A stretch of DNA of 63,830 bases, filler included, from Hyphochytrium catenoides (taxonomy: Eukaryota > Protista > Hyphochytriomycota), in NCBI GenBank assembly GCA_900088475.1. It is 6 parts of 6 records of this genome, joined end to end, with 100 filler letters (N's around TTAATTAATTAA, not from the genome) between each part and the next. Parts side by side here need not be neighbours in the genome. Positions count along the whole stretch, not along the records: positions 23,794 to 46,084 come from FLMG01004168.1; 5 more parts are not named here. One strand, written 5' to 3'. Shown piece after piece: positions 29,125-32,909 of the stretch. How positions within the stretch are numbered: position 1 is the stretch's first letter; each line of letters starts with the position of its first letter. The translations under genes and the position numbers were made by a program. A model generated the notes under the pieces. It worked only from the letters and a program-made list of their open reading frames with translations. It was not told the origin of the DNA and ran no database searches.

Positions 29125-32100
29125 CTAGGATGAGACAGTATAGTAGACCTTGGTGTTCCCTCCCTTGCTTCTCACGCGGGTCACTTGGACGATGCCTAGC
29201 TCCGAAGTGTTTCTTACGTGTGTCCCTCCACAAGGGCAAGAAAGGCCGGCAACGTTCACAACCCTGACGGGCTGAGTGTCGTCCAAATGACCTAAATCTG
29301 TGCTGCATTCCTTCTCTGCTTCGTCCTTTGCCACTTCCCTAGCCTGAGTTATAATGCTTTGTGCTATGAGCTTCTCGATGCTCGCATTTAAAGCTGGCAC
29401 CATCGAGGCGCAGACTTCAGCGGAGAGCTTACCCTTGTACTCTACGAAGGGACCATCGATGAAGTGATAAGATTTGCCAGGGATTAAGTCATATCTAGTA
29501 GTGAGAGCAGCACGTCCGCATGTCAGAGTTATAAGTAAAGCAGCAGGCAATCAATGGGAAGCTTGCACCAAGAAAGAGCGTCTCAAAGAGAAAAGGGGAA
29601 GAACACCCGAACAAACCGTGGGTGTCCAGAAAAGAGAGATAAAATGGGGAGAGAGAGAGTGTGTGTAGAGAGAAAAGAGAGATGGGTGAGAGAAGAGATA
29701 TGGGTCAGAGAGAGAGTGTCGAACAGAGAAGTGCGAAGGGAGAGAAGAGAAAGATGGGTAAGAGAGAGAGAGCGCCCAACCCTAGACATTGGAAGGTAAG
29801 TGGTGGATATAGAATGTTCTCCTTGTCCAACTCACCCGATCTCCTTCATCGCTCGGTCTAGGACATGTCCCGCTGAGTGTAGCCTTGCATGCAACCTACG
29901 CTTGGCCTCATCAATCTGCAGCCTCACATTGTCTCCAGAAGCGAGCTCGTCTTCGTCATCCTCTTGTTCTCTTATGTATGTACCATAATGGCACACCCTT
30001 CCATTATCCTTGTCCATCCTAACATCAGCCACAGCAAAGACAGCTCTATTCGTGGTGCTAGTAATTGTGCCGACATCACATGGCTGTCCACCTCCTTGTG
30101 GGTGGAAGATAGTCTGATCCAGGTAGAGACAGAGGCGCTCGCCATTTTCCTCTCTCTGGATACCTTGCACGGTGGCAGTAGCGTCAAACTTGTATGTGTC
30201 GTTGAAGTACAAGAGCTTTGTCTTCTCTCCTCCATTTGTCCGAGAGGCATCGAGGTCAGAAGCAACTTTCCTCATTCCGGTCAGCTCATTCACTGCTCTT
30301 ATTATTGCTTGGCTTGCGATGCCAACCTCATACTCCGTGGTGAATTTCCCGACTGAGAGTCTTAGTGTGCCGGCACCATAGTCGGATTCAAGACCGATAG
30401 CTCGTAGGACGTAGGAGATGTGCCGTTGACCTATAAAGGGACGGACGCAGAAGCGTTAGACCAGAGCCAAGCACTACGTGAGAAAGATGAGACCAGGATG
30501 TATTGGACAAACTGGATCACTCCGGTGAGCCAGCTTTAGATCTCTCAGAGACGTCGATTAGGTGAAGGTACAGCTTGGGATAACGTCTAAGGAGAGGTAT
30601 ACAGCCTCACAGGAGCCAGCGACGAGATTAGAGTACGAGCGAAGGATAAAGAATTGAACGCACTTCCATCCTTCTGAGAGTGGCATGCGGAGCCTGCACT
30701 GGCCGCTACGCTGTCCTTGATACGCCCTAGTATCTCCTGGGCCTGTAGACCCTTGAAGCTGATACTCAATGTATTCGGGAGACAAGAGTTTGCAGCAGAG
30801 TTGATCCGAGTTGGGAGGGAGATTCCTTGCAATATCTCGTCTCGCAACATATTTCTGAGATCTTTGAGTTTGTTCGTCACGCCGGAAGTCAGGGAGTCTC
30901 GGGCAATATTCGAGGCCTGTTTACGCAGAGAGAGATCACGTGTATCAGTCAAGAGCGCCAAAGGAGTAGATGATAATATCCTGTAGCGCTTATAGCTTAG
31001 GAAAAGGAGTCCATGTAACCCTAGTAAGACAGAAACTAGTGAAGCACATTGAGGGGAATTGTCACTTGGAGATCCAGCCAAATAGGCAGTGAGAATGTTC
31101 GAGAAGGATGTGATCAGGAAGGCCGTGGACAAGACACGCAAACGGATGAGGAGAAAGAAGCTCTAACCTCCCCAAGGGCACATATCAGGGAGACATTTTC
31201 CGTCCCTGCCCTCCTTCCATCTTCGTGACCCGCGCCATGCATGAGCGGTACTGGAGCAGCTGTCCCGTCCTTAATATATAGAGCTCCTATACCTTTCGGC
31301 GCATACATCTTATGCCCTGCCATTGTCAAAAAATCCACCCCTAGCTTCGGCACCGATACTTCCACCTTGCCAATTGACTGGCTGGCATCAGTGTGGACAA
31401 GCACCTGCGGATCTGCACAGAAAGGGGTAAGCCAAGCAGTCAGAGACCTGAAGGGTCCAGTACGGGAGCAGTCGTACTAAAAGGATGGACATAGGCAAAA
31501 TAGCATTAAAGACAACGAAGGGAGAGGTAGAGACAAGGATGGACAGCAGAAATGGCAGACAAGGAAAGACGAGAGACATGCGTAGAAAACCGAACAGTCA
31601 GTGACAGTGTGGCGACTTTCAGCATTAAAGACACTGCTTACTTACATATTTCTTTCACCCTCCTCACGATCTCTTGAATGGGCTGGATAGTTCCGATCTC
31701 ATTATTTGAGTGCATGATAGAAATCAACACGGTCTCGGGCCGAATGGCAGCTAGAACATCTGAGGGAGTCCGGCCACGGCAAGACAGAGGAAGATTATCA
31801 AGGGTAAAGTAACGCCAGATACGGAAAGAGGTGGTTTAGATGCAGAAGAGCTCTCGAGGGCAACATGGTTGCGCCACTAGACGATAAGCAGGTCCAGCGA
31901 GAGACAGAGATAGAAGCCGGCAAAGGCCGTCCCTCAGAGTGGCGCTGACCTTCTACCTGCACGACGCCGTAAGGAGAGGACACAGGGAGGTAAGTGACCT
32001 CAAAGCCCTTTGTTTCCAAGTATTTGCAGGTCTCAAGCACAGCGACGTGCTCTATCACGGTGGTGATTAGGTGATTTCCTCTCCCCGCCTCCCTCGCAGC

Positions 32101-32909
32101 TTCTGCTGAGCCCTTAATAGCGTAGTTGATAGACTCGGTGCCTCCTGCGAAGCAACGTTAGGGAGACGCTCAGAAGAAGGACGGAGTGGCGAGGCCGGCA
32201 GAGAGAGGAGAGAGAAAAGAGAGAGAAAAAAGGTGTCCGGGAGCTAAAAAGGGGGTGTGGGAGAGACTGTGTGTGTGTCAGTGAGAGAGAGAGAGATAAA
32301 GGGAGGAAAAGAGAGAGAGAGAGAGAGAGAGAGAACGCGCGCGCGCAAGAGAGAGAGAGGCTAAGAGAAGACAAGGGACGAGCCACATAAGGTTGTTTGC
32401 TCCTCTGTCCATGTCACAATCTTCGTCTGAACAACCGTCAGGGTCATGGGTTAGAGAAGAGGGGAGAGCAGACGGGCCAATACCTGACAGAAACACAATC
32501 TCAGAGGGCCGAGCTTCGATCAGCCGTGCCACCTGGCCCCGCGCGGCTGCCATTACCAAGTCAGTTGCTTAGACTTTTTACAAAGGCAAGTCTCCTTCTT
32601 ACGTCCCCTACGTCCATTCCCAACTTCCCAAGTCCTCTCAATCTTTGGCCTGCTGCCTCCCTCATTCACGGTAAGCATCTCTGCTCTTTTCCTGCTCCCT
32701 TGTTTGGTCATCTTGAAACGTCCTCTCTATTTTCTGTGAAGACCAAGCTTTCACTTACCCGCGACAGCCTCTGCTGCCCTGCGGCCGTAAGCATGTGCCG
32801 AGGAAGGGTTGCCAAAGTGCTCCGTCAGGAAGGGGAGCATCTTCTCTATCACTTTAGGGTCAATGGGCGTAGTGGCATTGTAGTCAAGATACACTGGAAG
32901 TTCGCCCAT
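29125..32909 (-). CDS. Fusion protein: NifS/selenocysteine-lyase-like PLP cysteine desulfurase plus AlaX alanyl-tRNA editing domain (8 exons, 661 aa)
   Basis: Exons 32909-32759, 32546-32484, 32144-31950, 31759-31646, 31412-31168, 30916-30664, 30430-29836, 29494-29125. All introns are GT-AG, phase-consistent, and sum to 1986 nt. NifS motifs: [71 protein letters not shown]. AlaX motifs: [24 protein letters not shown]. Confidence 0.9.

Follow-up and report, generated by a model that had tools for sequence, protein, structure and literature searches.

A Hyphochytrium catenoides gene predicted to join a NifS/IscS-type cysteine desulfurase to an AlaX-M tRNA-editing module, and the recurrence of this fusion in marine protists

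Background

Cysteine desulfurases of the NifS/IscS type, which carry pyridoxal phosphate (PLP), act on free L-cysteine or L-selenocysteine (Sec): they abstract S or Se, which stays on a loop cysteine as an enzyme-bound persulfide or perselenide, and yield L-alanine. AlaX-M proteins possess a zinc hydrolytic site that deacylates Ser- and Gly-mischarged transfer RNA (tRNA). We know of no PLP desulfurase with tRNA as its direct substrate, and of no pathway that links a desulfurase or selenocysteine lyase acting on free amino acids with an aminoacyl-tRNA editing domain. The subject of the present analysis is a gene of Hyphochytrium catenoides (assembly GCA_900088475.1) in which the two enzymes are predicted to be joined. 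It lies in a stretch of 63,830 nucleotides (nt), the window, which consists of six parts of six records joined end to end with 100 filler letters between parts; the part concerned, positions 23,794 to 46,084, comes from FLMG01004168.1. The prediction that one gene encodes a NifS/IscS-type desulfurase joined to AlaX-M is confirmed here, the gene being known in H. catenoides from DNA alone.

The closest described systems are the fusions of a NifS-like desulfurase with selenophosphate synthetase (SPS, SelD) found in bacteria, Acanthamoeba and Naegleria (PMC4561486). The window protein resembles these in having a NifS-like desulfurase N-terminal to a second enzyme, one from a tRNA-linked S/Se pathway, and one NifS-SelD fusion, the database protein P0260, ranks with the prokaryote-type proteins most closely related to the desulfurase half. 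The two differ in the partner, which is a tRNA-editing domain in the window protein: PF00586 and PF02769 occur in P0260 only, while Aminotran_5, tRNA-synt_2c and tRNA_SAD are the only domains of the window protein. Protist proteins in which AlaX is fused to LysRS, PheRS-alpha or an eIF2B-like protein contain the same AlaX-M family as a module at the C-terminus or otherwise appended, but in most of these other fusions the partner is an aminoacyl-tRNA synthetase, whereas here it is a PLP desulfurase, a metabolic enzyme. An appended domain on Plasmodium TrpRS is also reported. A literature search found no description of a NifS-AlaX fusion, in line with an earlier note on this DNA, whose author knew of none. 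AlaX appended to other proteins is already known in sequences, while a PLP desulfurase as its partner is undescribed in the literature found.

Taken separately, each half has well-characterized counterparts. The window protein shares with IscS, NFS1 and NifS the Aminotran_5 fold, the PLP lysine in a GHK motif, the HTDxxQ motif, the loop cysteine and the substrate arginine, but it has no mitochondrial presequence, carries a C-terminal AlaX-M, and belongs with relatives that do not reach the equivalog cutoffs. It is like animal selenocysteine lyase (SCLY) in fold and class, in being apparently cytosolic, and in having Cys-His at the catalytic loop; its desulfurase half is, however, clearly less similar to SCLY than to IscS/NFS1. 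The editing half is collinear from residue 2-5 with the AlaX-M protein PH0108 of Pyrococcus horikoshii (structure 2e1b; also 9iuw), and shares with it the GGGQP barrel, the HxxxH and CxxxH motifs and the lack of a C-Ala domain. Unlike PH0108, it falls far under the NF040865 cutoff, belongs to a eukaryote-rich clade and is appended to a desulfurase, and its substrate specificity is only predicted.

Gene model

All three minus-strand frames of 33000-29050 were re-read, and the gene model was rebuilt independently of the earlier note. The coding sequence comprises 661 amino acids (aa) and a single terminal stop, with no internal stop and with exon phases in agreement. All introns are of the GT...AG type with polypyrimidine-rich acceptors, and the start of exon 1 is the first in-frame ATG downstream of a stop codon. 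The features are as follows, with the evidence for each in brackets.

29125-32909, minus strand: whole gene, predicted NifS/IscS-type desulfurase, linker and AlaX-M; 8 exons, coding sequence 1986 nt, 661 aa (end-to-end alignment with fused relatives)
32759-32909, minus strand: exon 1, aa 1-50 (Aminotran_5 profile positions 1-45, expectation value E 8.5e-7)
32484-32546, minus strand: exon 2, aa 51-71 (collinear with relatives)
31950-32144, minus strand: exon 3, aa 72-136, with the GGTES and EH motifs (H104) (Pfam Aminotran_5)
31646-31759, minus strand: exon 4, aa 137-174 (Pfam Aminotran_5)
31168-31412, minus strand: exon 5, aa 175-256, with the HTDASQ motif and the PLP lysine K209, codon 31311-31309 (Aminotran_5, E 1.5e-18)
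30664-30916, minus strand: exon 6, aa 257-340, with the catalytic-loop C334 in SAGSACHS, codon 30685-30683 (motif, alignment)
29836-30430, minus strand: exon 7, aa 341-538, one frame across the domain junction (197 stop-free codons)
30276-30430, minus strand: C-terminal segment of the desulfurase in exon 7, aa 341-392, with the substrate-binding R364 in TLRLSVG (match to the NFS1/IscS C-terminus)
30222-30275, minus strand: linker of 18 aa, aa 393-410, first residue Met393 (model, alignment of relatives)
29836-30221, minus strand: N-terminal barrel of AlaX-M and first part of the editing domain, aa 411-538, with GGGQP and the HSAGH zinc motif, 29879-29865 (NF040865 AlaXM profile positions 1-108)
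29125-29494, minus strand: exon 8, aa 539-661 and stop, remainder of the editing domain, with CPCGGTH, C627 at 29232-29230 and H631 at 29220-29218 (tRNA_SAD, E 1e-8)

Because the end of the desulfurase and the start of AlaX lie in one stop-free exon, the junction between them depends on no choice of splice sites. In Pfam, Aminotran_5 (PF00266) matches exons 1, 3, 4 and 5, exon 7 gives tRNA-synt_2c, and exon 8 gives tRNA_SAD. In NCBIfam, the N-terminal half is matched by NifS/IscS models and the C-terminal half by the AlaXM model. Compared with solved structures, residues 5-52 of exon 7 match the extreme C-terminus of NFS1/IscS, and residues 70-197 match the AlaX-M structures 9iuw (residues 2-108, E 5.5e-10) and 2e1b (residues 5-112, E 3.3e-9). 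The earlier note had proposed an 8-exon model of 1986 nt and 661 aa, an in-frame fusion within the exon 30430-29836, and intact motifs in both halves. The independent rebuild gave the identical model, both domains are matched within that exon, and K209, C334, HSAGH (525-529) and C627...H631 are all present.

The locus was further compared with DNA contigs from two sequencing runs of the same organism. In the exons, the contigs differ from the window by 12 synonymous and 8 non-synonymous changes and by no stop; the two indels found in all are located in introns 4 and 7. At the junction itself, where the earlier note had proposed to look for a stop or a frameshift, the contigs of both runs have substitutions only. 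For the segment 30394-30521 there are two alternative contigs of 128 nt, both of which occur in each run, and substitutions amount to about 1% overall across 29100-33000; together these suggest that the source organism is represented by two haplotypes or strains. Long CT/GA microsatellites occupy parts of introns 2 and 7 (32198-32362 and 29640-29790) and the region upstream of the gene (about 33100-33230). The read contigs break at these microsatellites, and a scaffold N gap lies close by.

Recurrence of the fusion

An exhaustive phmmer search of exon 7 against 1.8 billion cluster representatives matched many proteins over the entire exon, including full-length ones of 670-771 aa. The window protein itself was not found in the protein collections searched, the best match of exon 7 there being 46% identical. 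The complete 661-aa model is collinear with P0003 (44% identity over 685 columns, E 1e-164), and it aligns end to end with P0035 at 43% and with P0090, P0013 and P0145 at 37-39% identity. In an alignment of 16 sequences the domain order and all catalytic motifs are kept throughout. Since the whole model is collinear with full-length fused proteins of other organisms, the fusion is not a chance join.

In a second search, the AlaX part was used as the query and long proteins only were retained, which gave 69 hits. About 37 of these have PF00266 and AlaX domains in the order NifS-then-AlaX, and this is the commonest architecture among them. The search for proteins combining Aminotran_5 with AlaX, and for their taxonomic spread, which the earlier note had proposed, thus gave at least 37 database clusters. 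Complete fused open reading frames (ORFs) from transcriptomes are available for Platysulcus tardus, for several MMETSP samples and in one TSA record. NCBI holds a fused protein from the thraustochytrid Hondaea fermentalgiana, titled 'Cysteine desulfurase, mitochondrial, partial'; both this species and Platysulcus tardus are stramenopiles. Further fused sequences come from EukProt transcripts and from TARA Oceans and other metagenome contigs. The fusion therefore recurs well beyond this genome, occurs commonly in marine protists, as seen in TARA and MMETSP sources, and stands in public databases under automatic names.

That the fusion is one continuous coding sequence is supported by the transcriptome ORFs and by two divergent relatives, in which the fusion is an uninterrupted ORF of 670 aa (on three contigs with eukaryotic neighbour genes) and of 802 aa (on a 154-kb contig).

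These results bear on the reading that H. catenoides makes no fused protein, either because an internal start or an alternative transcript yields two separate products or because the assembly is in error. Met393 within the linker would suit the former, and the draft scaffold with its nearby N gaps the latter. Such a reading has to contend with a junction inside a single stop-free exon, with contigs of two DNA runs that cover this junction and carry substitutions only, and with the same order and junction in dozens of relatives, intron-free ORFs and transcripts among them. It is considered very improbable. Nor is it helped by the stand-alone 245-aa 'AlaX' calls that cluster with a fused protein in one relative clade. 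Natural fission was considered for these calls and rejected, because they are artefacts of a contig break or end, a 100-N gap, or a change of frame in the linker.

The clade in question is one of TARA picoeukaryotes with a fused protein of 787 aa (P0164), whose Ser/Thr-rich linker breaks assemblies (L009:1121-3483 and L008:300-2572). One contig shifts frame there, one scaffold has 100 N, and others begin there; as a result of such breaks, gene callers report a separate 245-aa 'AlaX'.

In a maximum-likelihood tree of the desulfurase, one set with 95% support takes in every one of the 14 fused sequences together with 7 that are unfused, the NifS-SelD fusion P0260 being among the latter. The fusion may thus have had a single origin, which this tree allows. 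In the AlaX tree, 25 of the 26 fused AlaX domains are in one supported clade, along with some stand-alone members; this tree is poorly resolved, and some of its rows labelled 'alone' are truncated fused proteins.

The desulfurase half

From its sequence, the N-terminal half, of roughly 390 aa, is assigned to the class-I (NifS/IscS-type) PLP cysteine desulfurases, among which it forms a distinct subfamily. Eighty columns are conserved in both fused and unfused desulfurases. H208-K209, H181-T-D-A-S-Q186 and R364 lie in columns that are at least 85% conserved in both, and the catalytic cysteine C334 lies on the flexible loop in SAGSACHS, which satisfies the consensus S-x-G-S-A-C. Two of the 80 columns have a non-consensus residue in the window protein, S154 in place of A and K369 in place of R; both are non-catalytic. 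There are 12 specificity-determining positions in this half, which are confounded with the split between eukaryotes and prokaryotes.

Nearest to the half are two sets of unfused proteins, those of chlorarachniophytes and those titled 'cysteine desulfurase family' from bacteria and archaea, the latter at 52-55% identity. P0003, the closest relative of the window protein, does not reach the NCBIfam equivalog cutoffs (332 vs 530.75 bits for TIGR03402, NifS; 315 vs 643 for TIGR02006). The earlier note had called the enzyme NifS/Sec-lyase-like. The first part of this label is appropriate, the enzyme being of the NifS/IscS type, but it is not closer to animal selenocysteine lyase, since IscS, NFS1 and NifS score higher throughout. 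P0003 gives 249 bits to E. coli IscS and 185 to selenocysteine lyase, and exon 3 of the window gene matches cysteine desulfurases in the PDB with E of about 3e-11 and selenocysteine lyase with 0.095.

Cys-His at the catalytic loop has been regarded as a specificity marker of SCLY. The dipeptide is present in the window protein (C334-H335), but of 105 unfused relatives the majority have it too, 81 of them in the form TGSACHE. Because it is usual in unfused prokaryotic relatives, it is uninformative about selenium, and an SCLY-specific signature was rejected as diagnostic on this ground and on the ground that exon 3 is far closer to desulfurases. The gene contexts of three near prokaryotic relatives contain AFOR and ferredoxin, DsrE and CGGC, and a peptidase, respectively; at none of these three is there an AlaX neighbour that would indicate an operon-style link between NifS and AlaX.

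The AlaX half and the linker

The C-terminal half is predicted to be a complete AlaX-M module, with an N-terminal barrel and a zinc editing domain but without a C-Ala domain. It covers positions 1-108 and 137-233 of the NF040865 (AlaXM) profile, and the protein ends 30 aa past CGGTH. The equivalog cutoff of 300 bits is not reached by exon 7 (78), exon 8 (44) or P0003 (93.8), and by these scores the half is related to archaeal AlaXM without being an equivalog of it. Its family is a large one, composed mostly of eukaryotic stand-alone proteins of about 240 aa.

HSAGH 525-529, C627-GGT-H631 and GGGQP 453-457 lie in columns that are at least 80% conserved in fused and stand-alone proteins alike. 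Compared column by column, the two groups share 40 conserved AlaX positions, and no residue is conserved in fused proteins only. For this reason the editing domain bears no sign of a new specificity. HSAGH and CPCGGTH are equally typical of the stand-alone relatives, CPCGGTH being the commonest form there, and no additional conserved cysteine or cluster motif was found in the fused AlaX domains.

The distance from the desulfurase C-terminal motif to the AlaX GGGQ is 75-160 aa, of which about 65 aa are accounted for by stand-alone proteins. The linker is 17-18 aa in the window protein and varies from about 10 to 95 aa in relatives, with low complexity in some clades.

The AlaX-M family is fused elsewhere, in environmental and protist sequences, to LysRS (P0127, P0317, P0319, P0323, P0326 and P0339), PheRS-alpha (P0358), an eIF2B-like protein (PF01008; P0009) and PF16561 (P0077). 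LysRS-AlaX is the second commonest architecture after NifS-AlaX in the search for long hits. AlaX-M thus behaves as a portable module, the partners of which are mostly aminoacyl-tRNA synthetases. The stand-alone relatives nearest to the window AlaX (P0024, P0061, P0081 and P0104) have N-terminal extensions of 55-75 aa that are rich in R, S and L. These resemble organelle-targeting peptides, and some lineages may send the editing factor to mitochondria or plastids.

Possible functions of the fused protein

The AlphaFold2 model of P0003 has a mean pLDDT of 93.8 and a pTM of 0.71, and its N-terminal half superposes on NFS1/IscS with a target template-modelling score (TM) of about 0.9. No chain in the PDB and no cluster representative in AFDB spans both halves (query TM at most 0.57), and in the Protein Atlas and the AFDB clusters the neighbours are single-domain desulfurases or AlaX proteins, with no two-domain match.

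We consider it moderately probable that the product of the gene is a conserved bifunctional protein whose two catalytic sites work independently and are connected by a flexible tether. Each half would then perform its ancestral chemistry at its own active site. The desulfurase half would take S or Se from free Cys or Sec, release alanine and hold the persulfide or perselenide on C334, and the AlaX half would hydrolyze Ser- or Gly-mischarged tRNA at its retained zinc site. The fusion would act by tethering or co-expression, bringing S/Se mobilization beside aminoacyl-tRNA handling, and would create no composite active site. Lacking an N-terminal extension, the window protein is probably cytosolic; set against bacterial homologues, it shows no presequence.

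Several points weigh against this interpretation. Met393 in the linker may leave room for an internal start and thus for a separate AlaX transcript or product. Both activities are predictions from sequence for every member of the family, and the pTM of the P0003 model is uninformative on whether the domains pack. When a gene fusion persists over deep lineages, its enzymes usually belong to one pathway or complex; this fusion is kept in deeply divergent lineages, which suggests a functional link left unexplained by independent tethered sites.

Such a link might consist in cooperation of the two halves on a three-carbon amino acid that is bound to, or released from, tRNA. The protein would be either a selenium module tethering Sec recycling to tRNA(Sec), by clearing Ser-tRNA(Sec) or delivering Se at the tRNA, or a deacylate-and-destroy device against mischarging with Sec or Cys. 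Cooperation of this kind is regarded as rather unlikely.

In the selenium version, a Sec lyase would recycle Se to selenophosphate synthetase while AlaX binds tRNA(Sec) or clears unconverted Ser-tRNA(Sec), so that Se supply is coordinated with tRNA-bound Sec synthesis. This version is doubtful in itself; it is nonetheless plausible and, although weakly supported, ranks top among the coupling ideas. It owes its rank to four lines of evidence. Selenophosphate synthetase receives Se from NifS-like proteins and, in bacteria and protists, occurs fused to them (PMC4561486). The NifS-SelD fusion P0260 belongs to the prokaryotic clade closest to the desulfurase half of the fused family. Human AlaX cleaves Ser-tRNA(Sec) in vitro, with relaxed tRNA specificity (PMC11260482). 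Finally, the family is frequent in marine protists, and the Sec trait is scattered over Stramenopiles and other protists (PMC4561486). The lack of an organellar presequence in the window protein also accords with it. On the other hand, the desulfurase half is nearer to IscS/NFS1/NifS than to animal SCLY, the Cys-His motif is undiagnostic, and the other near prokaryotic relatives occur in sulfur-relay or unrelated contexts (DsrE and CGGC; AFOR).

The deacylate-and-destroy version was proposed in the earlier note as coupled quality control: AlaX would deacylate tRNA mischarged with Cys or Sec, and the tethered lyase would turn the freed amino acid into alanine. It makes chemical sense to pair a deacylase with an enzyme that uses up the amino acid set free, the zinc in the editing pocket could serve as a binding site for a thiolate or selenolate, and the fusion is conserved. 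This version is clearly improbable, however, for no residue separates fused from stand-alone AlaX, and hence there is no signal of a changed amino-acid specificity; moreover, the characterized eukaryotic AlaX proteins are strictly Ser-specific (PMC11260482). The long flexible linkers of many members also speak against channeling.

The earlier note further proposed that AlaX is an acceptor of S or Se from the desulfurase, or a tRNA dock for their transfer to tRNA. AlaX is joined at the desulfurase C-terminus, and acceptor proteins of IscS dock near the C-terminus in the IscS-IscU and TusA structures; the presence of AlaX-M on LysRS, PheRS-alpha and eIF2B-like proteins likewise fits a portable tRNA-binding module. 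Transfer to a tRNA base would call for an activating domain, but no PP-loop ATPase, rhodanese or radical-SAM domain was found with Pfam, and the absence of extra conserved cysteines or cluster motifs, together with zinc motifs equally typical of stand-alone relatives, provides no sign of an acceptor site. We regard this as the most improbable of the readings considered. Overall, the evidence leans mildly against all three proposals of the earlier note in their strict form.

A conserved fusion that is widespread in marine protists poses a concrete question for the fields of tRNA editing, iron-sulfur and sulfur trafficking, and selenium. The fusion could indicate an unrecognized control step in selenoprotein synthesis, given the in vitro action of AlaX on Ser-tRNA(Sec) and the supply of selenophosphate synthesis by NifS-like enzymes. 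If the halves do cooperate, it would represent a new link between S/Se mobilization and translational proofreading in marine protists; if they are independent, it would be one more multi-enzyme fusion of protists.

Neighbouring genes

Other features of the same region of the window are as follows.

28301-28774, plus strand: terminal exon of a gene for a myotubularin-like phosphatase (PF06602, E 1.9e-36)
34573-35999, minus strand: exons of a riboflavin-pathway gene, DHBP synthase and then a GTP cyclohydrolase II match below threshold (21.8 vs cutoff 23.3 bits)
43867-45027, plus strand: single-exon ORF of 386 aa with a BMT5-like rRNA (uridine-N3) methyltransferase domain (PF10354, E 2.5e-34)
23742-24173, minus strand: ORF fragment resembling, by eye, a retroelement reverse transcriptase

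An exact look-up of the 386-aa ORF in the public collection found no identical protein. The myotubularin-like gene is convergent with the fusion gene, the two stop codons being about 350 bp apart. If the GTP cyclohydrolase II match is real, the riboflavin-pathway gene would encode a bifunctional enzyme of the RibBA type known from plants, algae and bacteria. The reverse transcriptase-like fragment lies at the edge of its piece, with runs of N on either side.

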